The position numbers and the translations under genes were made by a program. Of a DNA stretch of 64,000 nt, positions 1,194 through 58,857 are shown piece by piece; positions within the stretch are counted from its first letter, which is position 1, and each line of letters begins with the position of its first letter. Where the stretch lies: the sequence record NC_019405.1, one strand, 5' to 3'. The notes under the pieces are model-generated. The model saw only the letters and a list, made by a program, of their open reading frames with translations. It was not told the origin of the DNA and made no database searches.

Positions 1194-1276
1194 GCGCGGC
1201 CTGCCGACCTAAGTCACAGACTGTAGGTTTCGTGACAAGGTAGGATATTTCACAACGATTTCAAGGGCTTATACCT

Positions 1277-1540
1277 ATGACGATCCGACACTACCTCCAC
1301 GATCTGGCCGTCCGTTTCGTCGTTTTGGGGTGGATTTTTGCCAAAAAGCCCCGAAAAACCGCTCCAAAAGGGCAAAATTTTCAGCCCCATCCGCCGGCCC
1401 TGGTCGACTGGGACCACCGCTGGCTCTATCTGGCGGCCGGTACTGGGCTGACGGCGGTCTGGCTCTGCTTCAGATTCGTTGGTCCAAGTCAAGACCCCTC
1501 GACCGCCCCGCCGCCAAGTCATAGACCGTGGGCTTCGTGA
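1277..1540 (+). CDS. Hypothetical membrane protein (87 aa)
   Basis: ORF with two hydrophobic stretches; AT-rich 5' part. Confidence 0.5.
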   Translation: MTIRHYLHDLAVRFVVLGWIFAKKPRKTAPKGQNFQPHPPALVDWDHRWLYLAAGTGLTAVWLCFRFVGPSQDPSTAPPPSHRPWAS

Positions 1541-1585
1541 CCAGATCACGCTTCCGTTACCGCTCCAGCCCTTGTGAGGCCTCGG

Positions 1586-1690
1586 ATGTTCGCCTTTCTC
1601 CGCCGGCTCAGCCTCGCCGCCGTCCATGGCGTGCTCTGGGCGATCCTCCTGGCGATGCTCGCCCTGGGCGGCCCGCGCCGCGCGCCCTAA
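1586..1690 (+). CDS. Small hydrophobic peptide (34 aa, MFAFLRRLSLAAVHGVLWAILLAMLALGGPRRAP)
   Basis: GAGG upstream; single TM-like helix; not in the ORF track. Confidence 0.5.
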   Translation: MFAFLRRLSLAAVHGVLWAILLAMLALGGPRRAP

Positions 1691-1770
1691 AGCGTCATAT
1701 CTGACGCCTAAAGCCCTCTAAGGGCTCATCTGTGAGACATTCAACGCCCTCGTGTTCCTCTGAACGCGGG

Positions 1771-1905
1771 GGCGTTTTGACGTCCGAGCGTTTTGACGCG
1801 GGCGCATTTTCGACTTGACGCGCGAGCGTTTTGACGCGGGCGCATTTTTGATTCGACGGGCGAGCGTTTTGACGTCCGAGCGTTTTTCAACTTGACGTCG
1901 TTTCA
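1771..1905 (+). repeat. Imperfect direct repeats (GA)GCGTTTTGACG
   Basis: About 5 copies interleaved with GCGGGCGCATTTT units. Confidence 0.85.
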
Positions 1906-1920
1906 TTTACCGCGAGCGCC

Positions 1921-2105
1921 TTAGGGTTAACGCCGGCCGCCGAGCCCTGGGGCGATTTACCACCACCGCGTTAACCTAACGCCTGTTAACCTATCGGTTG
2001 TTAAGGTTAACGCCCCGTTAGGGTTAACGCCCCTTAACCCTGCGCCCGTTAAGGTTAACGCGCCCCGGCCCAGGCGCCGCCCGGCCCTACCCGTTAACCC
2101 TAACC
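1921..2105. repeat. Dense cluster of GTTAAC/TTAACC half-sites
   Basis: About 10 TTAA cores in 185 bp of otherwise GC-rich non-coding DNA. Confidence 0.8.
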
Positions 2106-2170
2106 GCCCGACCCCCGCGCCCAGGCCATACCCGGTAGGGCCTGACGGCCCTACCGGGTATGCCCCCGCG

Positions 2171-2288
2171 CCCCGGCGGAGGCCAGGGACCGCCCCGGCG
2201 GAGGCCAGGGACCGCCCCGGCGGAGGCCAGGGACCGCCCCGGCGAGGGCCAGGGACCGCCTCGGCGAGGGCCAGGGACCGCCTCGGCG
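2171..2288 (+). repeat. 22-bp tandem repeat CCCCGGCGGAGGCCAGGGACCG x5.4
   Basis: Units start at 2171, 2193, 2215, 2237, 2259, 2281 (partial). Confidence 0.95.
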
Positions 2289-2303
2289 CTTTTTCGCGCC
2301 CCG

Positions 2304-2335
2304 TTTACCTTTTGTTAACTTCTGGCCTCTAGGGT
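2304..2335 (+). promoter_or_regulatory. CtrA-box early promoter 1
   Basis: TTTA-CCTTTTG-TTAA, 10 nt, CTAGGGT. Confidence 0.7.
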
Positions 2336-2383
2336 CGCCCTTGTCCCCGCCGCACTCCCGCGCCGGGCAAGGAGCTTCCCGCC

Positions 2384-2569
2384 ATGGTCCCCGACTCGAT
2401 CATGAACCCCCGCGACCACTTCCACCGCCTGCGCGAGGAAACCGCCCGCGCTCTGGTCGAGACGTTCGCCGAAACCGACCCCGGCGAGGACTACCGCGCC
2501 GAGGAAAAGGCCGGCGCGTGGGTTGTCGCCTATTACGACGCGGCGGGCGAATTCGTCGCCTATCTCTAG
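2384..2569 (+). CDS. Hypothetical early protein (61 aa)
   Basis: AAGGAG RBS downstream of promoter. Confidence 0.75.
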   Translation: MVPDSIMNPRDHFHRLREETARALVETFAETDPGEDYRAEEKAGAWVVAYYDAAGEFVAYL

Positions 2570-2593
2570 CCGCCTTCGCCCCCTGGCGCCGCG

Positions 2594-2626
2594 TTAACGG
2601 TTTGTTAACATATCGGCGCCAGGGTC
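2594..2626 (+). promoter_or_regulatory. CtrA-box early promoter 2
   Basis: Perfect TTAA-N7-TTAA (TTAA-CGGTTTG-TTAA) followed by CCAGGGT. Confidence 0.8.
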
Positions 2627-2668
2627 GCCCTAGCCCGGCGCGTCGCCGCGCCTTCGGAGAAAACCGCC

Positions 2669-3472
2669 ATGCTCTACACCCCCGCCGCCCGCCGCCTTCG
2701 CGCCTATCGCGAAACCGCCGCGAAGAACGCCGAAATTCACGCCCGGCCGCACATGTCCGGCAACGTCGCCGGCTATAACGAGTCGGTTTGGCCGACGACG
2801 GCGCTAGGCGTCGCCGCCAAGGCTGGCGCCTTCAAGCGCCCCGAAACCGCCGGCAACTGGTCGGAAGATCGCAAGGCCTATTACGCCCCCGCGTGGCCGG
2901 CCGGCTGGCGCGTGCTGGGCACGGCCGAAGAGGTTTGCCGCAAGGAAGGTTCGCGCCGGGTGGAACATTCCGGATGGTACACGACGCCCGACGACTACAG
3001 CGCCACCCTTTCGGGCTATGTGCTGCAAATCCCCGCCCGCGACGGCCGCCCGCAATACGTCGCCGGAACCGCCCATAGTGAATGGGACGGGGTGACCCTT
3101 TACCCCGCCGACCGTTTCGACAACCCGCTAGACGCGGCGAGCGCCGCCGACCGTCACGCCGAACGCGACGCCGAAGAGGAACGCGAATATCAAACCGCGT
3201 GGCAAGCGGGCCAGCGCTACGCCGAACTCGGCGCCGAAGCCAAGGAGGCCCGCAAGGAAGCGCTGGCGATCCTCGCCGAACGCCGCAAGGTCAAGGGGCT
3301 GGAAACCCCCGCCTTGTGCGGCGCGATCCGGGCGCAAGTTGAGGCCCTGCTAAGCCGGATCGAAGAGGCGCGCGCCTCGCGCGCCAAGCTCAAGGAAGGC
3401 GAGGACTCGCGCCTCATGTTCTACCCCTCCGCCCGCATGGTCGCGGCCTTCAATGACGGGGCGGCCGGGTGA
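2669..3472 (+). CDS. Hypothetical early protein (267 aa)
   Basis: GGAG RBS; protein-like composition. Confidence 0.85.
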   Translation: MLYTPAARRLRAYRETAAKNAEIHARPHMSGNVAGYNESVWPTTALGVAAKAGAFKRPETAGNWSEDRKAYYAPAWPAGWRVLGTAEEVCRKEGSRRVEHSGWYTTPDDYSATLSGYVLQIPARDGRPQYVAGTAHSEWDGVTLYPADRFDNPLDAASAADRHAERDAEEEREYQTAWQAGQRYAELGAEAKEARKEALAILAERRKVKGLETPALCGAIRAQVEALLSRIEEARASRAKLKEGEDSRLMFYPSARMVAAFNDGAAG

Positions 3473-3678
3473 AGGTCGCCCGCGACGCCTTCGCCGTGTT
3501 CTGGACCCTCCCCGCCGGAGGCGTCCAGTTTCACGCCGACATGAAACGGGCGCTTTACCCGACCGCCCGCGACGCCGCCCGCGCTTTTAGCGCCATGTTC
3601 CCCCGTGACCGGGTCCGGAGCGTCCGCGACGCCTCCGGCCGCTTCCTGGCCTTCAAGGAGTCCGCCCCGTGCGCCTGA
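3469..3678 (+). CDS. Hypothetical early protein (69 aa)
   Basis: GTGA overlap with upstream stop. Confidence 0.65.
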   Translation: MKVARDAFAVFWTLPAGGVQFHADMKRALYPTARDAARAFSAMFPRDRVRSVRDASGRFLAFKESAPCA

Positions 3679-3950
3679 TCAGCTACAACGTCAACGGAAC
3701 CGGCTTTAAGGGCGGGTCCGCCGCCCCCGTCCCGTGTCCCGCCCTCGCCGGCCACGCCGACGACGCGGGGCTATGGGTTCCCGACCGTGAAGCCGTCGCC
3801 GCCATGCTCCCGCATCGCTGGCGCGCCGCCTTCGCCCGCGCGGCGTTTTGGTATGACGCCCGCGACAACAAAAAGCCTTGCCGCGCCGACCTCTACGACG
3901 CGCGCGGCCGGTACCTGACTCAGGTCTGGGCGCATCCGGTTTTCGCCTGA
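3669..3950 (+). CDS. Hypothetical early protein (93 aa)
   Basis: AAGGAG RBS, GTG start. Confidence 0.7.
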   Translation: MRLISYNVNGTGFKGGSAAPVPCPALAGHADDAGLWVPDREAVAAMLPHRWRAAFARAAFWYDARDNKKPCRADLYDARGRYLTQVWAHPVFA

Positions 3951-3979
3951 CCAGACGCCCCGGAAGATTTTCCGGGGCG

Positions 3980-4011
3980 GTAACCTTTTGTTAACTTCTG
4001 GCCTCTAGGGT
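3980..4011 (+). promoter_or_regulatory. CtrA-box early promoter 3
   Basis: GTAA-CCTTTTG-TTAA, 10 nt, CTAGGGT; preceded by hairpin GCCCCGG-AAGATTTT-CCGGGGC. Confidence 0.75.
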
Positions 4012-4069
4012 GACTTTCGCCGCCGGGCAATCCCGCCCGCCGGACCCTCTTTCAAGGATTGCTCCCGTC

Positions 4070-5122
4070 ATGACCTCTCATTCCATGGTCGCGCACCGTT
4101 GGGCGCAGGACGACGAGAACGGCCGCACCGCGCGCGGCTTCAACATGTATTTCGAGCGCTACGGACGCGGCGCCGACCGCGTCAACGTGATTTTTTCCTA
4201 CGGGACTCACTTCCCGGCCGCCGCCTTCGTGACCGATGCGCACGGCCGCCGCGTGGTCCTCTACACGACGCACCGCCGGAGCGTTTCGACCGCGAAACAC
4301 CTTTCGCATATCCGTTGGGCTATCCCGTCGGGCGTGCCGGTGTTTTCCGTGCCGAACGTGTCGCGGATGCACAAGCCGGGCGGCGCGGGCGACTTCCACG
4401 GGGACAACCTGCGCGCCTATATCGAGAGCGCCGCCGGCCTCGCCGAAAAGGCCAAGCGCGCCCGCGTCTACGGCCCTTGGTTGCTTAGCCAAGCCCGCGA
4501 CCAACTCGCCGAAGCGCAACGCTACGCCGACGCCTTCAAGGTCAAGGGCTTCAAGGTCCCGGCCTTGGAAGACGTCGCCGGCCAATGGGCGAAGATGACG
4601 GCCGCCAAGGCGCGGGCCGAAGCCAAGGCCCGCAAGGAAGCCGAAAAGCGAGCCCGCGAAGCCCGTGAAGCCGAACGGCTCGCCGACGCCGAAGCCTTCG
4701 CCGCGTGGATGCGCGGCGAGCGCCAGAGCGCCCCGTTTAGCTACCGGGTGCGCGATGACGGGACCGTCTATCTTCGCCGCTTCCGGGGCGTGGTCCGCGA
4801 CCTGCGCAGTCAAGAGCGCGACGGCTCGCGCGTCGATGAACTGCAAACCTCGCAAGGCGCGGCCGTGCCGTGGGAACACGCGGTAAAGGCCTTCCGGTTC
4901 ATCAAGCTTTGCCGCGAACGCGGCGAGAGCTTCCACCGCAACGGCCGGGTGATTCGCGTCGGACACTTCCAAGTTGACGCGATCAGCCCGCAAGGCGACA
5001 TGACGGCCGGTTGCCACCGGTTCGCGTGGGATGAAATCGAACGCCTCGCCAGGGCCGAAGGGGTTTTCGACCTCCCCGCCGCCGCCGACGCCGTCGAAAC
5101 CCGGCAAGCCGAACCGGCCTAA
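4070..5122 (+). CDS. Hypothetical early protein (350 aa)
   Basis: AAGGA RBS; VAHRWA...IFSYGTHFP motif of a kind seen in phage early proteins; central coiled coil. Confidence 0.85.
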   Translation: MTSHSMVAHRWAQDDENGRTARGFNMYFERYGRGADRVNVIFSYGTHFPAAAFVTDAHGRRVVLYTTHRRSVSTAKHLSHIRWAIPSGVPVFSVPNVSRMHKPGGAGDFHGDNLRAYIESAAGLAEKAKRARVYGPWLLSQARDQLAEAQRYADAFKVKGFKVPALEDVAGQWAKMTAAKARAEAKARKEAEKRAREAREAERLADAEAFAAWMRGERQSAPFSYRVRDDGTVYLRRFRGVVRDLRSQERDGSRVDELQTSQGAAVPWEHAVKAFRFIKLCRERGESFHRNGRVIRVGHFQVDAISPQGDMTAGCHRFAWDEIERLARAEGVFDLPAAADAVETRQAEPA

Positions 5123-5177
5123 GCCCGCCCGACCCTCCAGCGCCCCGGCTCCCCGCCGGGGCGCTTTCGTGTACGCG

Positions 5178-5209
5178 GTAACCTTTTGTTAACTTCTGGC
5201 CTCTAGGGT
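5178..5209 (+). promoter_or_regulatory. CtrA-box early promoter 4
   Basis: Identical to promoter 3 (67-bp repeat 3977-4043 = 5175-5241). Confidence 0.75.
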
Positions 5210-5257
5210 GACTTTCGCCGCCGGGCAATCCCGCCCGCCGGCCAAGGATCGCAGACC

Positions 5258-5557
5258 ATGAATCTTTTCGTTGTCGCCATTGACCCCGCCCTCATCCCTT
5301 CGGCCGCCGGCTTCGTGGTCGCCTCCCCCTACGGGTGCGGCAAGTGGCGCGCGTGCGTCGGGAGCGAGGCGGACATGATCGCGCTTCGCGACAAGATGCG
5401 CCGCGCGCACCCGGCCCCGGAAGGCTACAGCGTCCAGCCCCTGGCGTCGTTCCTGGCCTATCTCGAAACGGTCGGTGAAAGCCCCTATGACCGGTTCCGC
5501 GCCCATGACGCCGCCGCCCGCATCCTTGACACCCTGACGACTCATCTCGCCGCCTAG
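5258..5557 (+). CDS. Hypothetical early protein (99 aa)
   Basis: AAGGA RBS after promoter. Confidence 0.8.
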   Translation: MNLFVVAIDPALIPSAAGFVVASPYGCGKWRACVGSEADMIALRDKMRRAHPAPEGYSVQPLASFLAYLETVGESPYDRFRAHDAAARILDTLTTHLAA

Positions 5558-5614
5558 CCCCTTCTCGCCCCCGGCGCGCGGCCGGGGGCGCTTTCCTCGA
5601 AAGGATCGCCGACC

Positions 5615-5983
5615 ATGACAACCCGTCTTATCGCCGTGCGCGGCCCGACCGCCGCCGAACTCGCCGACCCGTCCAGCCGCGCGGGCGGCGCCGAAGTCGT
5701 TTTCGAGCGCCGCGACCGCGAAGGCCGCACGCGCCTTGTGTTCGCCTCGACCTGCTACGGCTCATATCAGCAATGGGGCGAAACCCGCGACGTGCTCGCC
5801 GACAACGTCGAGGCGGTCACGCTCTGGGCCGAAGGCATGGCGGCCGTTGCCGCCCTCATCGACGAGAGCGACGACGACGACGCGCCCGACTGGGACGCCG
5901 TCACCGATGGAATCGCCTCCTTTGATCACGCCCGCGCCATGGACGGGGAAAACCCGGTCATGCGCGACGACGGGGAGGCGTGA
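5615..5983 (+). CDS. Hypothetical early protein (122 aa)
   Basis: AAGGA RBS. Confidence 0.8.
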   Translation: MTTRLIAVRGPTAAELADPSSRAGGAEVVFERRDREGRTRLVFASTCYGSYQQWGETRDVLADNVEAVTLWAEGMAAVAALIDESDDDDAPDWDAVTDGIASFDHARAMDGENPVMRDDGEA

Positions 5984-5986
5984 GCC

Positions 5987-6406
5987 GTGCGCACAACCAA
6001 GGCTCAACGCTTCGCCGCCATCGCCTTTGACGCCCTCGCCAAGGCCCTAAGCGAGCCGCGCCAAGCCGTCGCCCGCGTGACCAAATGGGAGGGCGCGGGC
6101 CATAGCTTCGCCAACCTCCAGCGCGATTATGAGCGATACGGCCCCGGCGCCCGCTCATGGTTCGGCCGGGCTGAAATGCGCTTCTTTGGGACGCGCCTAG
6201 AGGCCGCGCCGCTGGACTTCCCGGCGCTGGCCTGCACCCTCTTTCTGACCTCCGAAACCCCGCCCGGCGCCGGCCGGGTCTGGACCCTTCGCGCCTATGT
6301 CTGGGCTTCGGCCGATATCACCACGCTAACCCATGGCGACGAAACCGACGCGGCGACCGCGCAAGCGGCCTTTGACCTGCTTTGGCGGGTTCTCGCCGCC
6401 CGGTAA
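5987..6406 (+). CDS. Hypothetical early protein (139 aa)
   Basis: GGAGG RBS, GTG start. Confidence 0.75.
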   Translation: MRTTKAQRFAAIAFDALAKALSEPRQAVARVTKWEGAGHSFANLQRDYERYGPGARSWFGRAEMRFFGTRLEAAPLDFPALACTLFLTSETPPGAGRVWTLRAYVWASADITTLTHGDETDAATAQAAFDLLWRVLAAR

Positions 6407-6434
6407 CCTTTTGTTAACTTCTGCCCGCTAGGGT
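6403..6434 (+). promoter_or_regulatory. CtrA-box early promoter 5
   Basis: GTAA-CCTTTTG-TTAA, 10 nt, CTAGGGT. Confidence 0.75.
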
Positions 6435-6482
6435 CTTCTTGCGGCCGGGCAATCCCGCCCGGCCGCCCAAGGATTGGACCGC

Positions 6483-6755
6483 ATGACCCGCGCTCAAGCC
6501 CTCGCCGAAATGAACGCCCTTCCCGGTATCATCGCCTCTTTTGAGCGCGAGACGGGCGAATATCGCGTGACCCTGCGCTTTGGCCCGCTCCCCATGGGGC
6601 GTGGCGCTCAAGACTGGATGAACAAGCGCCGCGAAGCCGTCGCCAGCTACAGCGACGACAAGGCCGACGCCCTGGCCACCGCCCGCGACATGTCCGCCCG
6701 TTGGGAGGCGATGAACGCCGAAGAGCGTTCGCGCCTCTATCACAACCCCGCCTAA
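6483..6755 (+). CDS. Hypothetical early protein (90 aa)
   Basis: AAGGA RBS. Confidence 0.75.
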   Translation: MTRAQALAEMNALPGIIASFERETGEYRVTLRFGPLPMGRGAQDWMNKRREAVASYSDDKADALATARDMSARWEAMNAEERSRLYHNPA

Positions 6756-6821
6756 AGCCCCGCGCGCCGCCCTGGCCTTCGCCGGGGCGGCTCCCTCAAC
6801 CCCTCGCAAGGATCGCACCCC

Positions 6822-7106
6822 ATGACCGCCCGTAAGCCCCTGACCAAGGAACAAAAGGCCCGCCGCCGCGCGACCCGTCGCGCCGCCCGCCTCAACTGGT
6901 CGGATGAGCGCCGCGCCCGCGAATTCGAGCGTCAAGCCCGCTTCTTCCTAATGATCGCCACCCGCGCCCAAGGCGCCGGCCAAGGCCAGGAAGCCGCCCG
7001 CCTCGCCACGGTCGCACAACGCAAGGTGACAAACTGGCGCATGGCGCAGGCCTGCGCCCGGATTAACGCCCTGGCCGTGCATCCTTGGGCGGGGGTCGCC
7101 TCCTAA
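6822..7106 (+). CDS. Basic hypothetical early protein (94 aa)
   Basis: AAGGA RBS; Arg/Ala-rich. Confidence 0.75.
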   Translation: MTARKPLTKEQKARRRATRRAARLNWSDERRAREFERQARFFLMIATRAQGAGQGQEAARLATVAQRKVTNWRMAQACARINALAVHPWAGVAS

Positions 7107-7288
7107 TGGCCCGCCGCGTCCGCTACATGCCGTCCGAAGCTCTGGACCTCGCCGACGCGCTCGGCGAGGGGCTGGACCTCGTTAAGGCGATGAGCGAGGC
7201 CCGCCGCGCGGGCGCGCCTATCGCCGACACCCTCGCCGCCCTCGAAGACTGGGCTTTAACCGCCGTCAACCTCATAGAAGAGGACTAA
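7106..7288 (+). CDS. Hypothetical early protein (60 aa)
   Basis: TAATG overlap. Confidence 0.65.
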   Translation: MARRVRYMPSEALDLADALGEGLDLVKAMSEARRAGAPIADTLAALEDWALTAVNLIEED

Positions 7289-7293
7289 ACCCA

Positions 7294-7476
7294 ATGACGC
7301 ACCCTCACGCCCTGGCGCTGATCGCCCTCGCCGAAAAGGTGTTGCCGCTTACCCGGCTGCACCCGCTCGACCAACGCGCCGCCGCCGTCGACCTAATCGG
7401 CGACCTCTACGCCCTCGCCGACTCCATTGACGCCACCCCGCAAGCCGCCGCCCTGGCGCAACCGAAGGCCGCCTAA
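7294..7476 (+). CDS. Hypothetical early protein (60 aa)
   Basis: GAGGA RBS. Confidence 0.7.
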   Translation: MTHPHALALIALAEKVLPLTRLHPLDQRAAAVDLIGDLYALADSIDATPQAAALAQPKAA

Positions 7477-7479
7477 GCC

Positions 7480-8653: not shown

Positions 8654-8763
8654 GTCATCATTCCTACCGTCTATGACTTGTCACCGGCCGAAGTCTTACC
8701 CGGTGACAGTCTGGGCAAGTAAAGCTCACTCTGGATTTTATGACTTAGCGCAAAGGATTGAAA

Positions 8764-19330: not shown

Positions 19331-19452
19331 ACCGGTCTCCTTCCTTGGTCTGGTCTGTCCGGCGGCCTTGCGCGGCCCCTTGTGAAGATTTGAAGCTAAA
19401 CCGGCAACGAAACGGCGTCAAGACCTAAATGTGCTGATTCACGACTTCGAAT

Positions 19453-19468
19453 GTCGTGAATCTTGACA
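19453..19468 (+). promoter_or_regulatory. GANTC/-35 promoter motif before portal
   Basis: GTCGTGAATCTTGACA; inverted copy GATTCACGAC just upstream. Confidence 0.7.
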
Positions 19469-22402: not shown

Positions 22403-22450
22403 ATCTTGACACGCCATGTCAGGTGTGATGACGTAGCCCTCGTTAACCAC
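22396..22450 (+). promoter_or_regulatory. GANTC/-35 promoter, extended type
   Basis: GTCGTGAATCTTGACAC...ATGTCA-N7-TGAC...CTCGTTAACCA. Confidence 0.7.
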
Positions 22451-22462
22451 GAGGGCTTTTCC

Positions 22463-24643: not shown

Positions 24644-24879
24644 AACCGGCCCAGCCCATGCCCAACGGCATGCCGTTCGGGCGCGACGGCTTCCCGCGCG
24701 TCGAGAAGATCGACGCGGTGCGCAACATCGTCACCTTCCATACCGGCGAGACGGCCCCGATCACCAGTTACCTCGCCGGCGGCGAGGAGGTCGGCAACCC
24801 GCTGCGCGCCCAGGTCATCGTCTGCGGCCCCTATCGCGGCAAGTGGCTGGTCATTCCGGTCGAGGAGGGTGACATTTGA
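24640..24879 (+). CDS. Hypothetical protein (79 aa)
   Basis: GTGA overlap. Confidence 0.65.
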   Translation: MKPAQPMPNGMPFGRDGFPRVEKIDAVRNIVTFHTGETAPITSYLAGGEEVGNPLRAQVIVCGPYRGKWLVIPVEEGDI

Positions 24880-25483: not shown

Positions 25484-25530
25484 TTCTTGACACCCTATGT
25501 CGTCTGTGGTGACATCCGCTCGTTAACCAT
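25477..25530 (+). promoter_or_regulatory. GANTC/-35 promoter, extended type (paralogue of 22396)
   Basis: GTCGTGATTCTTGACAC...ATGTCG-N7-TGAC...CTCGTTAACCA. Confidence 0.7.
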
Positions 25531-25894
25531 GACGGGCTCCCTGATGATCCGCCTGACCAAATCCCAGCACTACACGAACACGGCGGAGAACGACCGTAGC
25601 TGGTACCTCGATCCGGGCCTGACCTTCGAGGTCCACGGCCTGCCGCCCGTCAAGCCGGAGCAGAAGATTGGCTACCCGGACGCCGGCGCCCTGGTCTGTG
25701 TGAATGGCGAGGCCCACTATGTCGACGAGGATGTCGAAACCATCCTCACCTTGATCAAGATCGCGCGGAACCCGCAGCGCTATCGACTGGCGACGGACGA
25801 GGGGAAGCTGATCGCCCACGAGGACCTGATCTACCTCGGCTACTCGGACGGCTCGTTCGATTACGGCCTGATGGGCGAGGAGCGCTACCAGTGA
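25529..25894 (+). CDS. Hypothetical protein (~121 aa; start uncertain)
   Basis: ORF directly after promoter. Confidence 0.7.
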   Translation: MTGSLMIRLTKSQHYTNTAENDRSWYLDPGLTFEVHGLPPVKPEQKIGYPDAGALVCVNGEAHYVDEDVETILTLIKIARNPQRYRLATDEGKLIAHEDLIYLGYSDGSFDYGLMGEERYQ

Positions 25895-31400: not shown

Positions 31401-31564
31401 GTCACGAAACCCTGGTTTCGTGATCTGATCTAGGCCCCTCGGGGCGGAGTTGCCGGGCTCTCTTGCAAAAGCCCGGACCGATTTCGCCCGCACGGGCCAG
31501 AGCTTGAGCGCCGATCCTGGCGATCGCTCGAACAAGTCAAGTCACGAAACTCTGGTTTCGTGAC
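31401..31564. promoter_or_regulatory. Two GTCACGAAAC-N4-GTTTCGTGA(C/T) palindromes before MCP
   Basis: 31401-31424 and 31541-31564. Confidence 0.75.
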
Positions 31565-31663
31565 AAGAGAATTCCCTCGGTGACGGCCGGTCGACCGAGG
31601 GGCAGACCGAGACGGGGTCCGTCTCTCAACCAGACCGGTGCGAACACCAAGAGGAGCAAGCCA

Positions 31664-32599
31664 ATGGCTGCTGTGACCCTGCTGCAAGCGTCCGAAATGG
31701 CGCTCGGCAACGACGAAGTCAAGCGCGCCGCGATCATCGAACTTTTCGCGACGCCCGACATCCTGCGCGTGATCCCGTTCCTGGACATCCAGGGCGGCGC
31801 GTACACCTACCTGCAAGAAGGCCAGCTCTCGGGCGTCGCCTTCCGGGGTATCAACGAGTCCTACGACACGTCGACCGGCGTGATCAACCCGCAAGTCGAG
31901 CGCCTGCGCATCGTCGGCGGTGACCTGGACGTCGACAAGTCCCTGCTGAAGACCCACGGCGCCAACGTGCGTTCGCAGCAGGAGCGCATGAAGGTCAAGG
32001 CCCTGAGCCTGTACCTCGCCGGCAAGATCATCAACGGCGACTCGGAAGCCGACCCCCGCGAGTTCGACGGTCTGCGCAAGCGCATCACCGGTTCGCAACT
32101 GTTCCCGGCCGGCGCGACCGCTGGCGGTGACGCCCTGTCGCTGGCCATCCTGGACGAAGCCATCGACGCGGTCGACGGCGCCACGCACCTGATCATGTCG
32201 AAGCGCATGCGTAACCTGCTCGCGCAGTCGGCCAACAACCCCAACGTCACCGGCTACGTGACCTGGGACAAGGACGAGTTCGGCATGCGCGTGATGCGCT
32301 ACGCTGACCTGCCGATCCTGGTCACCGACTACGACGACAAGAACCAGCAGGTCATCGACTTCAACGAAGCCTGCCCTGGCGGCGGCTCGGCGGTCGGCAC
32401 CTCGATCTACGTCGTCAACATCGGCGACGAAGGCGTGGTCGGCCTCCAGAACGGCGTCATGGAGATCGAAGACCTCGGCGAGATCGACGCCAAGCCGGTT
32501 CTGCGCACCCGCGTTGAATGGCTGGTCTCGCTGGCCGTCCTGAGCGGTCGCTCCGCCGCTCGCGTCTGGGGCATCAAGAAGGCCGCCGTCACCCGCTAA
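31664..32599 (+). CDS. Major capsid protein (311 aa)
   Basis: GAGGAG RBS; HK97-fold-like pattern (FRGINESY, GGDLDVDK, FDGL.KR); highly biased codons. Confidence 0.9.
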   Translation: MAAVTLLQASEMALGNDEVKRAAIIELFATPDILRVIPFLDIQGGAYTYLQEGQLSGVAFRGINESYDTSTGVINPQVERLRIVGGDLDVDKSLLKTHGANVRSQQERMKVKALSLYLAGKIINGDSEADPREFDGLRKRITGSQLFPAGATAGGDALSLAILDEAIDAVDGATHLIMSKRMRNLLAQSANNPNVTGYVTWDKDEFGMRVMRYADLPILVTDYDDKNQQVIDFNEACPGGGSAVGTSIYVVNIGDEGVVGLQNGVMEIEDLGEIDAKPVLRTRVEWLVSLAVLSGRSAARVWGIKKAAVTR

Positions 32600-33123: not shown

Positions 33124-33160
33124 TGGGCGAGCCGGGTTCCCGGCGTTCGGTCAAAGTCAA

Positions 33161-33190
33161 CCCCCGGACCCTGGTCCGGGGGTTTTCTTT
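33161..33190 (+). terminator. Rho-independent terminator
   Basis: CCCCGGACC/GGTCCGGGG plus TTTTCTTTT. Confidence 0.8.
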
Positions 33191-37474: not shown

Positions 37475-37481
37475 GCCCTAA

Positions 37482-37505
37482 GTCACGATCCCATAGGATC
37501 GTGAC
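37482..37505. promoter_or_regulatory. Perfect palindrome TAAGTCACGATCC-CATA-GGATCGTGACTTA
   Basis: GTCA-N16-TGAC family, before the giant fibre gene. Confidence 0.75.
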
Positions 37506-37548
37506 TTAGTCCGCCTCCTCGTCTCCGCCGCCTCAAGGGTCCTTCGCG

Positions 37549-52505: not shown

Positions 52506-52508
52506 TTC

Positions 52509-52949: not shown

Positions 52950-53052
52950 CAGCAGCGTCAGAGCGGCGTTGGACCACGAGGTCCGCCGCGAGCTTCTGCG
53001 TTGTCGTCAGGAACGGCCCGCCAGCAATCCCGCTGGCGGGTCGTTTCGTTTT
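52950..53052 (+). ncRNA. Candidate ~100-nt small RNA
   Basis: TTGACA (52921)/GCTAAA promoter, long hairpin, terminator CCCGCCAGC-AATCCC-GCTGGCGGG plus T-tract; no ORF. Confidence 0.5.
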
Positions 53053-53589: not shown

Positions 53590-53696
53590 GATTTATAGTC
53601 AAGCTTGGGTGCCTGCGGCCAGAAGTCGCGCTTCTTGACACCCGATCTGGGCCGGCATAACCATAGGGCCATCATTCCTGGGTGGAGTTTTCCCTA

Positions 53697-53903
53697 ATGG
53701 CTGTCGCGCTTACTGTCGTCTCGGTTGAGACCGAATCTACCATCCAAGGTGTTGACCCCGACGCGGCGCATGTCCGCCTGATCGAGGTCCTGCATACCGC
53801 CGCAGAAGCGGGTCTTGGGGAAATGACGTTGGAAGTCAAAGCGGAGATCGCGGCGCTGCTCCAGCAGGCGTCCGTGGAACTCTCCCACTGCCGGCCGGTG
53901 TAG
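53697..53903 (+). CDS. Hypothetical protein (68 aa)
   Basis: GGAG RBS; TTGACA promoter at 53635. Confidence 0.65.
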   Translation: MAVALTVVSVETESTIQGVDPDAAHVRLIEVLHTAAEAGLGEMTLEVKAEIAALLQQASVELSHCRPV

Positions 53904-53937
53904 GGGTCCCGTAAATCGCCATCCCAGAGGGAGCGAC

Positions 53938-54804
53938 GTGTCCGAGTCTGCTGAGTTCAACCCGCTCGACCAAAATCAGTTCCCTCCTCGCCTCACCAAG
54001 GCTGCTGCGCGACAGGCGCGGCGCCAGGAGCGCAGCCAGAAAAAGGACCCCACGGCCAACAAGCCGAACTACAAGGCGCTCGAAGCCAAGACCGAACGCC
54101 AACGGCGCTATATCCAGGCCCTCAAGGCCGGTGAAAGCGTCATCGCTATTGGTGGGGCCGGCACGGGGAAGACCTATATCCCGTCCCGGCTCTTCGCCAA
54201 GAAGCTGATCGAAGCGAAGATCGAACGCCTGATCATCGCCCGCGTCACCGCCTCGCGCCCCAAGCACGCCCTGGGCTTCCTGCCCGGCAAGCTGGAAGCC
54301 AAACTCGCCCCGTGGCTCGTCCCGGTGATCGAGGGCGTCAAGGCCGAGATGAACGCCCAGACCTACACCCAGTTGCAGGAAGCCGGCAAGATCGAGTTCG
54401 CCTCGTTCGAGCATATGCGGGGCCGGACCTTCGCCGAGTGCTGCGTCCTCCTCGACGAGGCGCAGAACGCCGACTACAAGGACCTGAAGATGGTCCTGAC
54501 CCGCTGGGGCGAGAACGCCCAATACGCGGTCACCGGCGACGTCGACCAGATCGACGTCGACGATTCGGGCCTGGAGACGGTCGTCGACATCGTCGAGACC
54601 CACGACATCCCGATCCACGTGATCGAGTTCACCGACGAGGATGTCGTCCGCTCGCCCATGGCCAAGGCCTGGGTCAAGGCGTTCTCCGCCCACGAGGGCA
54701 AGGACGGACGGACGCGGCGCTTCCATCGCCCCACTGTCAGGAATCTTGACGTCTTGCCGGCTTTTATCGATAATGGCCGAGTCACGAAACCCGTGGCGTC
54801 GTGA
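53938..54804 (+). CDS. phoH: PhoH-like ATPase
   Basis: GGAGTGKT, LGFLPGKLEAK, MRGRTF, LLDEAQN, GDVDQID, DVVRS. Confidence 0.95.
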   Translation: MSESAEFNPLDQNQFPPRLTKAAARQARRQERSQKKDPTANKPNYKALEAKTERQRRYIQALKAGESVIAIGGAGTGKTYIPSRLFAKKLIEAKIERLIIARVTASRPKHALGFLPGKLEAKLAPWLVPVIEGVKAEMNAQTYTQLQEAGKIEFASFEHMRGRTFAECCVLLDEAQNADYKDLKMVLTRWGENAQYAVTGDVDQIDVDDSGLETVVDIVETHDIPIHVIEFTDEDVVRSPMAKAWVKAFSAHEGKDGRTRRFHRPTVRNLDVLPAFIDNGRVTKPVAS

Positions 54805-54821
54805 CAAAGACGTAGCGCACC

Positions 54822-55343
54822 ATGGCCTTCACCTTCGTTGTTGAGACTGGCGCCGGGGACCCGGCCGCGAACTCGTACTGCGACGTGCAGTTCGCGGACG
54901 ACTACATCTACGCCAATGTCTACGCCAACACCGCCTGGGACGCGCTGGATCAGGATGGCAAGGAACGCTTCCTGGTCCGGGCGTCCAAGTACCTCGACCG
55001 CACGATCGCCTGGGCCGGGGAGAAGGTCGACGAGGATTCCGGCCTGCGCTGGCCGCGCGCCGGGGTCTACGACATCGACGGCTTCCTGATCCCCAGCGAC
55101 GCGATCCCGCAGCAACTCATGGAGGCCACCGCCGAGATGGCGGCGGCCCTCATGAACAACGACTGGACCTCGCCGCAGACCACGCGCGGCATGAAGGAAA
55201 TCCAGGTCGACGTCATCGAACTGAAGTTCGACAGCGAAATCCAGCGCGGCTCCATGCCCGACATCGTCATGTCGATCCTCGAAGGTCTGGGGGTCGTCAA
55301 GACCGGCACCCGCCCGGCCTTCAAGAAGATCATTCGCCACTAA
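54822..55343 (+). CDS. Head-tail connector/adaptor (DnaT-like domain family)
   Basis: VETG.G...ANSY..V..AD.Y, L.RAS.YLD, L.WPR, IP..L..A.AE.A. Confidence 0.8.
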   Translation: MAFTFVVETGAGDPAANSYCDVQFADDYIYANVYANTAWDALDQDGKERFLVRASKYLDRTIAWAGEKVDEDSGLRWPRAGVYDIDGFLIPSDAIPQQLMEATAEMAAALMNNDWTSPQTTRGMKEIQVDVIELKFDSEIQRGSMPDIVMSILEGLGVVKTGTRPAFKKIIRH

Positions 55344-55735
55344 TGGCCCTCGAAGCCTTCATCCGTTCCCAGGTCGTCATCGCCTTCAACCAGCTTGACG
55401 ACATCGCCAAGCGCTGGACCTACGTCCAACGCTCGGGCGATCCGGTGCGTGATGTCGAGAGCGGCGTGACCACCTATCCTTCCACCGAGATCGTCATTCC
55501 CAAGGCGGTCAAGGTGCGGTTCAAGAAGGACGAGAAGGACGCCCACGGCCAGACCCTGGTGGGCGAGAAGGTCCTGTTCCCCCGCGTCTTCCTGCCGGGC
55601 GACTTCGAGACCGCGACCTCCGACTACCTCGTCGACCAGAACGACATCATCTGGGAGATCATCAGCGACCTGGGTGACCCGGCCTCGGCGCTGGCGATGT
55701 TCCAGGTCCGCAGCACGCGGAAGAAGACCCCGTGA
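55343..55735 (+). CDS. Head closure / stopper-type protein (130 aa)
   Basis: Position after adaptor; beta-rich. Confidence 0.65.
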   Translation: MALEAFIRSQVVIAFNQLDDIAKRWTYVQRSGDPVRDVESGVTTYPSTEIVIPKAVKVRFKKDEKDAHGQTLVGEKVLFPRVFLPGDFETATSDYLVDQNDIIWEIISDLGDPASALAMFQVRSTRKKTP

Positions 55736-56205
55736 AGTCGGGCGGAGCCAAGCTCAGCTTCTACACCGACGGGAACCTGGAGGCGGCGTTCAAGCGCTTC
55801 TTCGCCACCGCCGAGAAGCGCTATGACGAGCGGGCCGATCGCCTGCTGATCAAGCTGAACGAACTGATCCTGGCCCGCACCCCGGTGTGGGAAGGCGACA
55901 CCATCCACAACTGGCGCTGGTCGACGCGCGCCCCGGACATGCGCCACGAGGCCCCGCTCGACAATGGCGATCCGGGCCGCACGAGCGAGATGGACCTGGG
56001 CCAGGAGCCGCGCCGCCGCGTCAACGAGACGCGCCCCCGCCAGTCGCTGGCCGGCGCTCTGCGCGCCAAGGAGCCGATCGACATCTATCTGACCAACACC
56101 GCCGAGAGCGCGGTCGATCTCGAATACGGCCTGCTCCCGACCAGGGCGCAGAGCCGAAACAAGATGGGGATGGTCCGAATCTCGATTAAAGAGGTGTTCG
56201 GATGA
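55732..56205 (+). CDS. Neck/tail completion protein (HK97 gp10-like position, 157 aa)
   Basis: RTPVW.G...NW, Y.TN..E...LEYG. Confidence 0.7.
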   Translation: MKSGGAKLSFYTDGNLEAAFKRFFATAEKRYDERADRLLIKLNELILARTPVWEGDTIHNWRWSTRAPDMRHEAPLDNGDPGRTSEMDLGQEPRRRVNETRPRQSLAGALRAKEPIDIYLTNTAESAVDLEYGLLPTRAQSRNKMGMVRISIKEVFG

Positions 56206-56276
56206 TCCCCGCCTTCATCATCCTGCCGCGCGTCTATCTCGCCGCGTGGCTGTCGTTTTGGCTGGGAGAGGACTGA
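56202..56276 (+). CDS. Coupled 24-aa hydrophobic peptide (MIPAFIILPRVYLAAWLSFWLGED)
   Basis: ATGA overlap upstream and TGATG overlap downstream. Confidence 0.55.
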   Translation: MIPAFIILPRVYLAAWLSFWLGED

Positions 56277-56731
56277 TGCTCGAACACGACATGCTCCGGC
56301 AAGTCCTGGAGCAGCAGGCCGTCGCCGCTGCCCCGACGATCGGGCTGAAGCTGAACTTCGACAACTCCGAATTCGTCCAGCCCAAGGACGGTGCGCACTG
56401 GGCTGAGTTCTGGGTCCAGACGGGCAACACCGTGCCCTGCGAGGTCGCTGGCCCGCGCGGCTACGAAAAGACCTCGGGCCTGATCCAGTTCACGCTCAAG
56501 GCCCCTGAGGAAGAAGGCAACGGCGCGATCCTCAAGAAGGCCGGCGCGCTCAAGAAGGTCTTCAACCGCCGCCAATGGGTCGTGCCGCCGGACGGCTATG
56601 TCACTCTCGACCCGATCTCGGTCCAGTCGCACGGCAAGCCGATCGACGGCTTCTATAATGTCGTGGTCTGGGCGACCCTCTGGTTCCACCACCGCGATCC
56701 CGACGCCGACGATCGCTGGATTCGCGGTTGA
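56276..56731 (+). CDS. Tail terminator protein (DUF4128-like, 151 aa)
   Basis: FDN..F..P....W, G..Q......G.G pattern; precedes the tube gene. Confidence 0.75.
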   Translation: MLEHDMLRQVLEQQAVAAAPTIGLKLNFDNSEFVQPKDGAHWAEFWVQTGNTVPCEVAGPRGYEKTSGLIQFTLKAPEEEGNGAILKKAGALKKVFNRRQWVVPPDGYVTLDPISVQSHGKPIDGFYNVVVWATLWFHHRDPDADDRWIRG

Positions 56732-56874
56732 CCGCGTCTTTCACACCGGCTAAGGTCGTGAATCTTGACATTTCCCAAAGTCTAGGGTAGGGTCACCACA
56801 CTTGCGATGCAGGGCCGGGTCGGCACGCTCGCTGACCCCCTTTTGTCACAAAACCGTGGATTGGTGACCTGCCC

Positions 56875-58707
56875 ATGGCTGCATCGTTCTTCGCCGACTC
56901 CAACCGCGCGCGGATGCGCTACATCAAGGAGAACAACGTTGTCTGGGGCGTGACCCCCGCCAGCGGCGTCTCCCGTGAACTGCGGTACACCGGCTCCACC
57001 GTCAACGCCCAGAAGGACACGACCCTCTCGGAAGAAATCCGTGCTGACCGCATGGTGTCCGAGATCGTCGAAGTCGCCGCGCGCACGACGGGCGAAATCA
57101 ACATCGAATTCTCGGCCGGCTCGCACGACGACCTGCTGGAAGCTTTCATGTACGGCGCCTGGACGCGCCCGATGACCTTCGACTCGGTCCAAGGCGTCTC
57201 GCTCGAATGGGCTGACACCGACACCCTGTACGTCAAGGGCAAGAACGTCACGCCCTACTTCTTCGCCGGCCGTCGCGTCCGCACCCAGGGCTTCGTCAAC
57301 GTCGCCAACAACGGCTACTGGCAGATCGCCACGATCACCTTCAACGCCGGCGCCAACCGCACCGAAATCAACATGTCGACGTCGACCGCTGTCGCTGAGC
57401 GCGGCACGGCCTACTCGGCGCTCTACGACGCCAACGACGTCATCGTCCTGAACAACACCGCCATCCGCGCCGGCACCGCCGGCGAGGCGGCGTTCGACTC
57501 CAACGGCACCAACGCTTTCGCTGCGGCGATCGCGGCGGGCCAACTGTCGGTCGGTCAGAAGATTTTCGTCGAAGGCCTGGGCTTCGAGACCGGTACGGTC
57601 GTCCTGGCTGGTCTGCCGACCGCCGGCGCTCGCGTCCAGGTCAGCGATGGCGTCAAGACGGTTCCCTTCCAGTTCGGCGGTTCGGCGGCTCAGCCGACCG
57701 TGGTCGTCGCCCTCGGCGCCGACGAGACGGAGACCGCTCAGAATCTCGCCGATGCGATCAACAAGCTGCGCGTGCGCAAGCAACTGGAAGTCGGGGCCTC
57801 GGCCGCGACCGGCACCGTCACCCTGCGCAACCTGCTGGTCACCGGCGGCTCGATCATCGAGACCGTGGCCGACGCCAACGTCACCGTGACCAACTTCTCG
57901 GGCGGCGACGCCTCGCTGCGCGGCGTGTTCACGATCGAAGCGCTGACCGACGACAAGATCACGGTCAACCCCGCGCCCGCGACCCTGGATAACTCGACCA
58001 TCAAGGTCAACATCAAGGGCTCGATGCTCCGCAACCCGTTCGACCCGGACGTGATCACGGCGCAGTCGTTCACCTTCGAGACCGGCTTCGAGGATGTCGA
58101 CCAATACTATCTCGCCGACGGCATGCGGATCGGCACGATCGCGCTGAACATCGCCGCCAACTCGATCCTGACGGGCTCGTTCGGTCTGCAAGGCCGCGCC
58201 TCGACCCGCCAGAACACCTCCAAGCTCGGCGAAGCGCCCTACACCGCGCTCCAGACGACCGCGACGCCCGTGGCCAACGCCACCGTCAACGTCGGCAAGA
58301 TCGCCATGAACGGCGAAGAACTGTCGACCGCCGTGCAGTCGATCGCCATCAACGGCACGAACAACCTGCGTGACCAGATGGCCGTGGGCTACAAGTTCCC
58401 CGCCGGCATCGGCGCGGGCCGCATGGAAATCTCCGGCTCGCTGGTCGCCTACTTCGCCGACGGCAACCTGTGGGACAAGTTCATCAACCACGAGACCGTC
58501 TCGGTGAGCTTCCCGCTGACCGACGTGCTGGGCAACCACTACGAGTTCACGATCCCGGCGGCGAACTTCTCGACCGACACCGTGAACCCGGCCGGCGGCA
58601 ACCAGGACATCATGGAGAACCTGGAATACACCGCCAAGCGCGACCCGGTCACCGACTGCCAGTTCCAGATCGACCGCTACTCCTCGATCTTCGCGAACAC
58701 GAACTAA
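56875..58707 (+). CDS. Major tail tube protein (610 aa)
   Basis: SNRA...YIKE, S.EIR.DR.V..., NNLR...AVG, G..EISGS...YF.D; inserted accessory domains. Confidence 0.88.
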   Translation: MAASFFADSNRARMRYIKENNVVWGVTPASGVSRELRYTGSTVNAQKDTTLSEEIRADRMVSEIVEVAARTTGEINIEFSAGSHDDLLEAFMYGAWTRPMTFDSVQGVSLEWADTDTLYVKGKNVTPYFFAGRRVRTQGFVNVANNGYWQIATITFNAGANRTEINMSTSTAVAERGTAYSALYDANDVIVLNNTAIRAGTAGEAAFDSNGTNAFAAAIAAGQLSVGQKIFVEGLGFETGTVVLAGLPTAGARVQVSDGVKTVPFQFGGSAAQPTVVVALGADETETAQNLADAINKLRVRKQLEVGASAATGTVTLRNLLVTGGSIIETVADANVTVTNFSGGDASLRGVFTIEALTDDKITVNPAPATLDNSTIKVNIKGSMLRNPFDPDVITAQSFTFETGFEDVDQYYLADGMRIGTIALNIAANSILTGSFGLQGRASTRQNTSKLGEAPYTALQTTATPVANATVNVGKIAMNGEELSTAVQSIAINGTNNLRDQMAVGYKFPAGIGAGRMEISGSLVAYFADGNLWDKFINHETVSVSFPLTDVLGNHYEFTIPAANFSTDTVNPAGGNQDIMENLEYTAKRDPVTDCQFQIDRYSSIFANTN

Positions 58708-58857
58708 GGGCTTAGTCACGATTCCCCCGAATCGTGACAGCCCCACCCGCTTCCCCCGATAGACCAAAGTCCCCAGGACAGAAGTCTCAGCGCTGAGCAG
58801 GGCCGCCCGGAAATCGGGGCCGGGCGGCCCACCCTCCCCGATACGGAATCCCCGAAC

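Follow-up and report, generated by a model that had tools for sequence, protein, structure and literature searches.

The stretch of DNA analysed here (the window) comprises bases 1-64000 of the genome of Caulobacter phage phiCbK (JX100813; record NC_019405.1) and carries a family of short palindromes bounded by GTCA and TGAC. phiCbK is the phage standardly used with Caulobacter as a cell-cycle model, yet its regulatory signals have hardly been mapped so far. We found neither a description of the palindrome family nor a transcription-start study of phiCbK in the literature, and the 2012 genome paper does not mention a repeated intergenic motif or palindrome. The nine sites listed in the original prediction are all present, the one at 31401 with a single mismatch (it ends in GTGAT), and an extra copy lies at 93182, beyond the 64-kb window.

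On the plus strand, two palindromes are located in the terminal repeat: site A (1213..1236; -12.7 kcal/mol, z -2.3) is imperfect, its better arm, GTCACGAAACC, being on the minus strand, and site B (1518..1541; z +0.4) is weak and overlaps the stop codon of gp002. The ends of site B are conserved in the related phages Rogue and Bajun. Site C (8654..8707), a weak GTCAT...ATGAC palindrome, abuts the stop of gp017; a stronger second hairpin comes next, at 8680-8707. Site D (31401..31424; -12.5 kcal/mol, z -3.45) adjoins the TAA stop of the scaffold gene gp067 and forms a 10-bp stem with a 4-nt loop, in which the last base pair is G.U; it is conserved in Rogue. Site E (31541..31564; -14.6 kcal/mol, z -3.9), a perfect 10-bp stem with a 4-nt loop, is the first helix of a structured leader of about 125 nt ahead of the major capsid gene, whose true ATG is probably at 31664. 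Site F (37478..37509, core 37482-37505; -23.3 kcal/mol, z -9.3) has a 14-bp stem and lies 7 nt past the stop of gp075 and 43 nt ahead of the giant gp076 gene.

Further downstream, a sigma-70-type promoter of the TCTTGAC family, TTGACG-17-GATAAT (54746..54774, plus strand), has its predicted +1 at about 54781, exactly where site G (54781..54805; z -1.1) begins, 7 nt past GATAAT; the palindrome is thus downstream of the promoter and not a part of it. Site G folds into a 7-bp stem, a 2x2 internal loop and a 2-bp stem, its right arm includes the TGA stop of the PhoH-like gp086, and gp087 starts 16 nt downstream. Its orthologs have stems of 12-13 bp, perfect in Colossus and with one G.U pair in Kabachok; that of Gurke is shorter and contains wobble pairs. 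Site H (56845..56868; -4.2 kcal/mol, z +0.9) is degenerate, with only 5-bp GTCAC/GTGAC pairing, and is found in phiCbK and Rogue only; it occupies about +45 of the tail-tube leader, 6 nt ahead of the ATG, and is directly preceded by a terminator-like hairpin (56817-56838). Site I (58708..58743, core 58715-58738; -23.2 kcal/mol, z -7.7) combines a 10-bp stem with a 5-bp outer stem, lies 7 nt past the TAA stop of the tail-tube gene gp092, a spacing identical in five phages, and forms the first helix of a conserved structured spacer ahead of the chaperone and tape-measure genes.

The pattern GTCA-N16/17-TGAC has 12 matches in the window, against 1.19 +/- 1.12 expected (maximum 4 in 100 dinucleotide shuffles), and its strict form GTCACGA-N10/11-TCGTGAC has four, against none expected. 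Eight of the 12 are intergenic or run across a stop codon, in a window that is about 87% coding; the motif is thus not equally frequent in coding DNA, the outcome that the original prediction had named as counting against it. The matches at 24850, 33514, 37097 and 55376, which lie inside genes and have no self-complementarity in their interior, were rejected as chance occurrences. The repeat unit consists of the arm GTCACG-WWW-C(C), 3-5 bases, and the complementary arm, giving a total length of 24 or 25 nt, in one case 22. The loops (UCUG, CCUG, CAUA, CCCC and CGU in phiCbK) are unconstrained in sequence, the conserved part being the stem, and the GTCACG arm with its A/T-only triplet is kept in a genome of 66% G+C. 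As predicted, genes do lie downstream of the copies in the structural region, but "preceding structural genes" is an incomplete description, since most copies directly follow an upstream stop codon: those at 31401, 8654, 37482 and 58715 begin 0-7 nt after it, and the right arms of those at 1518 and 54781 contain it.

The arm also occurs by itself. Lone GTCACG arms are found beside start codons, single arms serve as stop-RBS-start linkers in Colossus and Kabachok, and clusters of 3-7 arms are present in Kabachok and Gurke, downstream of the gene located after that for the terminase. Intergenic single arms have no preferred orientation (16 sense, 18 antisense). Among the six phage genomes scanned (Rogue was left out), AGTCAC is enriched 4-10x in the intergenic DNA of phiCbK, Colossus, Kabachok and Gurke, and only about two-fold in that of Bajun. 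In bacterial chromosomes (about 185,000 species genomes) the motif is not enriched, with 115 matches against about 140 expected by chance, and no Caulobacter or Brevundimonas title appears among the bacterial matches listed; any binder would therefore be phage-encoded. A scan of IMG/VR with the strict pattern returned mostly single chance matches, plus CcrRogue and CcrBL10, and a search of the window with Rfam yielded only tRNAs at the gathering score.

Six of the phiCbK copies fold well and four weakly. The predicted RNA folds of the palindromes at 31401, 31541, 37482, 58715, 54781 and 1213 have energies of -11.8 to -23.3 kcal/mol, with z-scores of -3.5 to -9.3 for the first four, while those at 1518, 8654 and 56845 are weakly self-complementary (-4 to -6 kcal/mol, z around 0). 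The predicted combination of conserved arms with a palindromic interior therefore holds for 31401, 31541, 37482 and 58715, and in part for 54781 and 1213. The four copies that barely fold have nonetheless kept their GTCA...TGAC ends at the fixed 24-bp length in Rogue and Bajun.

Across 35 aligned copies, the proportion of paired cells is 80% (shuffles: 68%) and the covariation score 0.298 (shuffles: 0.140), neither value being reached in any of 500 shuffles. Double-change cells number 58 against 34. These figures are to be read bearing in mind that related sequences can beat all shuffles without any structure and that a DNA palindrome would score alike. Template-switch mutation, moreover, can keep palindromes perfect without selection on RNA. 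A comparison made to tell which strand tolerates G.U gave no significant difference, with 18 G.U and 12 A.C mismatches in the sense strand (p = 0.36). At least five variants of the inner stem exist, and complementarity is preserved at the positions that are not conserved: the inner stem is AAA/TTT in phiCbK and Rogue and flipped to TTT/AAA in Colossus, Kabachok and Gurke, with retention of pairing, as at site E, which is conserved in all four relatives. Between phiCbK and Rogue, site F exhibits three mirrored double changes, one of them in the flank outside the core. In the leaders that start with sites E and I, the other helices covary too.

The family occupies the same gene junctions in CcrRogue, CcrColossus and the Brevundimonas phages Kabachok and Gurke, namely scaffold|MCP, gp075|gp076, PhoH|gp087, tube|chaperone and gp121|gp120, i.e. 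in four other genera-level lineages whose divergence is large (the capsid gene is about 75% identical at the DNA level). In Bajun and CcrSC the motif is absent from these junctions, and unrelated GC-rich hairpins, some of them terminator-like, are found there instead; in particular, both phages have a hairpin of different sequence at the place of site E and other GC hairpins at the place of site I. At gp075|gp076, Kabachok, Gurke and CcrSC have a terminator-like GC hairpin followed by a U-rich tail.

We propose, with a probability of about one half, that the palindromes function as RNA stem-loops at cistron boundaries, which protect or process mRNA ends or attenuate transcription. Of the two possibilities raised in the original prediction, a protein operator and an RNA hairpin signal, the latter is now better supported, through the compensatory changes, the hairpins in the motif-less relatives, and the two copies embedded in covarying leaders. 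The palindromes are transcribed, each giving an arm GUCACG-WWW-C(C), a free loop of 3-5 nt and the complementary arm, and have one of three placements: 0-7 nt past the stop of the gene for an abundant protein (scaffold, gp075, tail tube), at the extreme 5' end of a transcript or leader (as the first helix ahead of the capsid gene, and at the predicted +1 for gp087), or immediately ahead of a start codon (tail tube, gp120). According to our proposal, the hairpin would cap whichever mRNA end carries it, protecting the upstream segment from 3' exonucleases or the downstream one from 5'-end-dependent attack by RNase E; the RNA may first be cut within the A/U-rich stretch immediately 5' of the stem. 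Attenuation of read-through is a possible further effect at some junctions. With either effect, neighbouring products of one operon would be made in different amounts. Location, pairing with its conservation and covariation, and replacement by other hairpins in relatives are observed; that the hairpins act at the RNA level, with a stabilising or attenuating effect, is what we infer.

Stabilising hairpins of this kind are exemplified by the intercistronic stem-loops of Rhodobacter capsulatus puf and the 5'-terminal stem-loops of the E. coli ompA type. The phiCbK hairpins resemble them in being stem-loops devoid of a U-tract, placed between cistrons or at the mRNA 5' end beside genes whose products are required in widely differing quantities, and in that any stable hairpin can substitute; they differ in that about 10 copies share one cross-genus arm, and stabilisation is here a proposal. 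As a conserved family of intergenic hairpins flanking highly expressed genes in long polycistronic transcripts, they also recall the RNase III sites of T7, which, however, are interrupted helices of about 20 bp (about two helical turns), whereas the phiCbK stems measure 10-15 bp and are conserved in sequence. The lambda nut/boxB signals are likewise small hairpins located close behind a stop codon or near the start of a transcript, but in boxB it is the loop that is conserved and recognised by an N-type protein, while in phiCbK conservation is confined to the stem, the loop being free, and a boxA-like partner is absent.

Because the arm sequence and its A/T triplet are conserved across genera far beyond the needs of a generic hairpin, the hairpins may have an additional, sequence-specific partner. 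The excess conservation of the arm, the retention of the ends in the weakly pairing copies, and the single and clustered arms all fit a sequence-specific binding protein, possibly one acting on DNA. A tentative alternative to RNA stem-loops, which we consider rather less than probable, is therefore that the palindromes are double-stranded DNA operators for a candidate dimeric phage regulator with the half-site GTCACG plus an A/T triplet. Such a protein would act as a repressor or roadblock, between cistrons or, in the case of the gp087 promoter, by covering +1 to +25, where site G overlaps the predicted start. This reading retains its weight because the arm is conserved across genera and also occurs singly, and the intergenic enrichment of AGTCAC is in its favour. 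It does not account well for the complementarity preserved at non-conserved positions of the inner stem, for the variation of arm spacing by 1-3 bp, or for the finding that the motif-less relatives place unrelated hairpins, rather than unrelated sequence, at the same spots. Moreover, TgrL (gp216, XRE), the only phiCbK regulator with a measured motif, was rejected as the binder, since its weight matrix, derived from ChIP-seq, has C-A-A-C-C as the strong half-site (PMC10688885, S2 Table) and is unlike GTCACG. The short phage-specific sequences that touch stops and starts in many intergenic gaps are reminiscent of the stoperators of mycobacteriophage L5 and the C1 operators of P1, the latter also in occurring both as single sites and as inverted pairs. 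On the other hand, L5 stoperators are asymmetric and have one orientation, whereas the single arms of phiCbK have no orientation bias; in contrast to both systems, most phiCbK copies are self-complementary with covariation, and phiCbK is virulent. To our knowledge, no protein that binds the phiCbK palindromes has been described.

It is also conceivable, if unlikely, that the 12-nt word (A)GTCACG-WWW-CC defines a phage-encoded regulon of several Dolichocephalovirinae genera, read by a candidate small phage protein. The word would be presented as a hairpin at operon boundaries, or as a single arm in ribosome-binding regions and in the arrays downstream of the gene after the terminase gene, and by binding it the protein would coordinate either what becomes of the mRNAs or transcriptional roadblocks, for the genes of capsid and tail and for some of those of replication. 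Phylogenetic profiling for a candidate binder yields a lead only: nine phiCbK proteins are present in the four motif-bearing relatives and absent from Bajun, four of the nine are also absent from CcrSC, and no Pfam domain was found in any of them. The four candidates that share the profile of the motif are gp064, gp232, gp237 and gp252; that they have no recognisable DNA-binding domain speaks against the operator reading.

Hairpins located directly past the stops of gp067, gp075 and gp092 could also be terminators or attenuators that lack a U-tract, possibly factor-dependent, and cut read-through into gp076 and the chaperone and tape-measure genes, the more so as three other lineages have canonical-looking terminators at gp075|gp076. 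We regard this as improbable. The 3' flanks of the family hairpins are not U-rich, so that the U-tract of intrinsic terminators is absent, and a consensus terminator scan called 33159-33184 and 56817-56838 but no member of the palindrome family, although the former, predicted as a canonical terminator, indicates that the phage uses such signals elsewhere. Neither gp076 nor gp093-095 has a promoter to itself, hence read-through must be substantial. In each of four RNA-seq runs from infected cells, one contig covers 53600-59500 without a break and passes through three palindrome sites, which thus lie in RNA-derived contigs; contigs show neither RNA ends nor strand nor depth steps, but since they bridge the sites there is no sign of a complete stop there. 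Finally, the copies at the promoter +1 and in the capsid-gene leader cannot be terminators.

There is very little likelihood that the family is a selfish or recombinogenic repeat without a regulatory role, spreading from one intergenic site to another as a short mobile element or linker. Site F of Rogue equals, with one change, the reverse complement of a D/E-type hairpin, which suggests replacement of copies between sites, and the single-arm linkers of Colossus and Kabachok point in the same direction; however, copies are kept at the same five junctions in very divergent phages, phages without the motif have other hairpins in their place, and we found neither an associated transposase nor copies in host genomes. 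The phiCbK family shares with the PeSL cassettes of T4-type phages and with REP elements the character of repeated intergenic stem-loops exchangeable between sites, but, unlike PeSL, it is not tied to a promoter copy (site G excepted) and, unlike REP, it is not above chance in bacterial chromosomes and is syntenic across genera.

The role first suggested, that of binding sites for a late-gene activator or part of a late promoter, is largely refuted and carries the lowest probability: the family is concentrated in the structural-gene region with a gene downstream of each copy, but a separate and much better promoter family, tGTCGTGAATCTTGACa followed by a -10-like element, with 20 copies in phiCbK, heads the structural, lysis and replication operons and accounts for them, the distance from palindrome to start codon is not fixed (6, 8, 16, 40-44 or about 100-120 nt), no -10-like element lies at a constant distance and no other element is conserved downstream, two copies (6 and 16 nt from the ATG) are too close for a promoter, copies abut upstream stops, and site G is downstream of its promoter.

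Most likely, then, the family represents an ordinary kind of phage control, in which hairpins would shape the messages of structural genes, and its interest would rise only if a sequence-specific partner of the conserved arm were found. The separation of the promoter family from the hairpin family provides a first operon map of the structural region and marks about 10 short, mutable elements at which the relative amounts of capsid, tail and tape-measure products are probably determined.

Three further ideas were considered and rejected. A methylation site for CcrM/GcrA was dismissed, as GANTC is present in the Colossus-type arms (GAGTC, GACTC) and not in most copies of phiCbK and Rogue. Placed 7 nt past a stop codon, a hairpin could by its geometry stimulate read-through or frameshifting, but after the tail-tube stop the frames remain open for at most 9-18 codons. 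A factor shared by promoters and hairpins was suggested by the resemblance of the upstream element of the phiCbK promoter, GTCGTGA, to the right arm of the hairpin; its counterparts in Colossus, Kabachok and Gurke differ from it, reading TGCCAGGAA, TGCCGTAAA and TGTTGTAAT, respectively, and the hairpin arm is still GTCACG, so that the two do not co-vary and the idea was dropped.

All nine GTCA...TGAC sites of the original prediction are found in the sequence, at 1213, 1518, 8654, 31401, 31541, 37482, 54781, 56845 and 58715 (sites A to I), and the existence of a palindrome family is confirmed and sharpened. The 64-kb window (left terminal repeat, early genes, head and tail genes, tRNA array) is identical, with unchanged coordinates, to bases 1-64000 of JX100813.1/NC_019405, the genome of Caulobacter phage phiCbK; it was compared with the remainder of that genome and with the complete genomes of CcrRogue, CcrColossus, CcrSC and three Brevundimonas phages, Kabachok, Gurke and Bajun. 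Within the window, GTCA-N16/17-TGAC has 12 matches (1.19 expected) and the strict GTCACGA-N10/11-TCGTGAC has four (0 expected). When spacings of 12-20 were scanned over 213 kb, with terminal-repeat copies counted twice, N16 stood out with 14 matches, compared to 2-7 for each other spacing. Exact matches at 24850, 33514, 37097 and 55376 lie within genes, lack internal complementarity and are due to chance. Only one other copy within the unique 205 kb belongs to the family; located at 93182, it separates gp121 from gp120, both of them minus-strand genes. In the family unit, the arm GTCACG-WWW-C(C) and its complement enclose 3-5 free bases. Treated as RNA, the copies at 31401, 31541, 37482, 58715, 1213 and 54781 have folding energies of -11.8 to -23.3 kcal/mol, while those at 1518, 8654, 56845 and 93182 barely fold.

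The copies are placed at gene junctions. Sites D (31401) and C (8654) abut a TAA stop codon, F (37482) and I (58715) begin 7 nt past TAA, the right arm of B (1518) includes the gp002 stop codon, and that of G (54781) the stop codon of the PhoH-like gp086. Site H (56845) ends 6 nt upstream of the tail-tube ATG, the copy at 93182 lies 8 nt upstream of the gp120 start, and E (31541) is about 100 nt upstream of the probable true start of the capsid gene. We propose, with a probability of roughly one half, that the motif is a cistron-boundary RNA stem-loop. It would cap mRNA ends arising from transcription start, processing or termination, and could thereby help to fix the stoichiometry of the scaffold, capsid, tail-tube and tape-measure products. 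Our literature search found no published description of the GTCAC...GTGAC motif, which is a new instance of a well-known type of phage signal.

With tblastn anchors, the family was located at the same junctions in CcrRogue, CcrColossus, Kabachok and Gurke, namely scaffold/capsid, gp075/gp076, PhoH/gp087, tube/chaperone and gp121/gp120. The GTCACG base is constant, and the inner stem is AAA/TTT in phiCbK and CcrRogue and TTT/AAA (or TTAG/CTAA) in CcrColossus, Kabachok and Gurke. Between phiCbK and CcrRogue, site F shows mirrored double changes at three places, of which one falls in the flank beyond the core, and the CcrRogue version is, but for one change, the reverse complement of the hairpin type seen at D and E. 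Among 35 aligned copies, the share of paired cells is 80% (68% in shuffles) and the covariation score reaches 0.298 (0.140 in shuffles); none of 500 shuffles reached either value. The copies measure 24 or 25 nt in total, with a single case of 22 nt, and the 7-nt gap past the tail-tube stop is the same in five phages. The motif was not found in the structural region of Bajun, and the complete CcrSC genome has zero matches to GTCAC-N14/15-GTGAC; in both phages unrelated G+C-rich hairpins occupy the same junctions. The gp075/gp076 junction carries a hairpin with a U-rich tail behind it in Kabachok, Gurke and CcrSC, and a promoter with a 5' hairpin after it in Bajun. Since unrelated hairpins replace the motif at these positions, the conserved feature there is a stem-loop, which argues for action on a single strand, most simply on the mRNA. 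Covariation and hairpin replacement thus support the RNA hairpin signal that had originally been offered as an alternative.

Two copies belong to larger structures. Sites E and I each form the opening helix of a longer intergenic RNA in which the remaining helices covary too. The segment 31541-31663 is a conserved, covarying leader of three or four helices. The alignment reveals an ATG at 31664 behind a conserved AGGAG, equivalent to the capsid start of the relatives (where the protein is annotated as 311 residues), so the GTG at 31580, annotated as the start of the major capsid gene, is probably incorrect. In all six phages compared, the tail-tube/chaperone spacer (58745-58855), directly preceding the frameshifting chaperone genes, contains a structured RNA that is strongly conserved; it combines a CUCA-GCGC-UGAG hairpin with a covarying 11-bp hairpin carrying a conserved GGAAATCGGGGCC loop.

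The main rival of the RNA stem-loop reading, a DNA operator bound by a phage protein, appears rather unlikely to us. Several observations do point to a sequence-specific partner: the arm is conserved beyond the needs of pairing, with a triplet that is always A/T despite a genome of 66% G+C, and in the sense orientation the 5' arm is intact in 30 of 36 copies versus 21 of 36 for the 3' arm. At gp121/gp120, CcrColossus, Kabachok and Gurke retain the left arm only, directly before the ATG. Among these phages GGAGTCACGTTTC also makes up whole stop-RBS-start linkers (in CcrColossus and Kabachok) and is clustered, 3-7 copies together, downstream of the first gene after the terminase gene (in Kabachok and Gurke), in a region homologous to phiCbK 800-1600, where sites A and B are located. 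Intergenic AGTCAC is enriched 4-10 times in phiCbK, CcrColossus, Kabachok and Gurke, and about two-fold in Bajun. On the other hand, no orientation bias was found for single arms, which argues against a stoperator-like system; a sense-strand wobble test gave 18 versus 12, a difference that is not significant. TgrL (the XRE regulator gp216), the sole phiCbK regulator with a measured motif, was rejected as the binder, as it binds CAAC(C); four small proteins (gp064, gp232, gp237 and gp252), all of unknown fold, are left by phylogenetic profiling. The phage also encodes the helix-turn-helix proteins gp109, gp149, gp171 and gp268. The motif is not a host repeat, since a search of 185,000 species genomes returned 115 matches, approximately the chance level; no Caulobacterales were among the match titles listed. 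Three copies of the search pattern, 166-191 bp apart, occur at 7031-7410 of an Ectothiorhodospiraceae metagenome bin and are probably an unrelated repeat array. Just past the terminase large-subunit stop, the unannotated phiCbK segment 793-987 has about 40% identity to the N-terminus of a 335-residue Kabachok/Gurke protein, whose gene bears GTCACG arm clusters in its 3' flank.

An attenuator without a U-tract, a close variant of the RNA stem-loop reading, is considered quite improbable; gp076 and gp093-095 have no tGTCGTGAATCTTGACa-family promoter and must be transcribed through sites F and I. The original proposal of a late promoter or activator element is not supported, because the palindromes lie downstream of or far from promoters, at irregular distances to the next gene, and the operons are headed by the tGTCGTGAATCTTGACa family.

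This family, found in a scan prompted by near-matches, consists of tGTCGTGAATCTTGACa with a -10-like element (often GTTAACCAT) about 17 nt further on; its members would be the real promoters, and it is a much stronger family than the palindromes. The 20 phiCbK copies stand at the head of structural, lysis and replication operons. Each is intergenic or at the extreme 3' end of the gene before it, and each faces downstream genes, including portal, scaffold, gp070, gp084, gp087, tail-tube, gp096, gp100, endolysin and ribonucleotide-reductase. They are located on the plus strand at 19455, 22398, 25479, 30467, 33214, 47396, 53091, 54738 and 56757 in the window and at 65671, 71808, 78368, 113275, 115694 and 200178 beyond it, and on the minus strand, also beyond it, at 107243, 101267, 94015, 87911 and 86954. 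Every relative has the family; the element that precedes the -35 box varies with the lineage: GCCAGGAA in CcrColossus, GCCGTAAA in Kabachok, GTTGTAAT in Gurke and GTCG(T/C)(G/C)(A/G)A in Bajun. A GANTC (CcrM) site is found immediately upstream of the -35 box. At three promoters (19438-19460, 200161-200183 and 101262-101284) the conserved upstream element is the right arm of a full palindrome, TCACGAC-N7-GTCGTGA, a possible operator for the regulator of the promoter. The promoter TTGACG-17-GATAAT (54746-54774) was called independently by a consensus scanner, and its predicted +1, around 54781, would be the base at which hairpin G begins. The tail-tube leader contains hairpin H at about +45 and, ahead of H but after promoter 56757, a terminator-like hairpin (56817-56838) with a CCTTTT tail, which may be a leader attenuator. 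The hairpins at 22436-22456 and ~25510-25535 carry terminator annotations or predictions. Each is situated after a TCTTGAC promoter and ahead of the following start codon, and they look like 5' leader hairpins instead; their loops exhibit TTAACCA(T), a word resembling a CtrA half-site. RNA-seq contigs in three of four runs start at 53040-53050, at a predicted terminator (53010-53047) upstream of promoter 53091, consistent with a real transcription gap.
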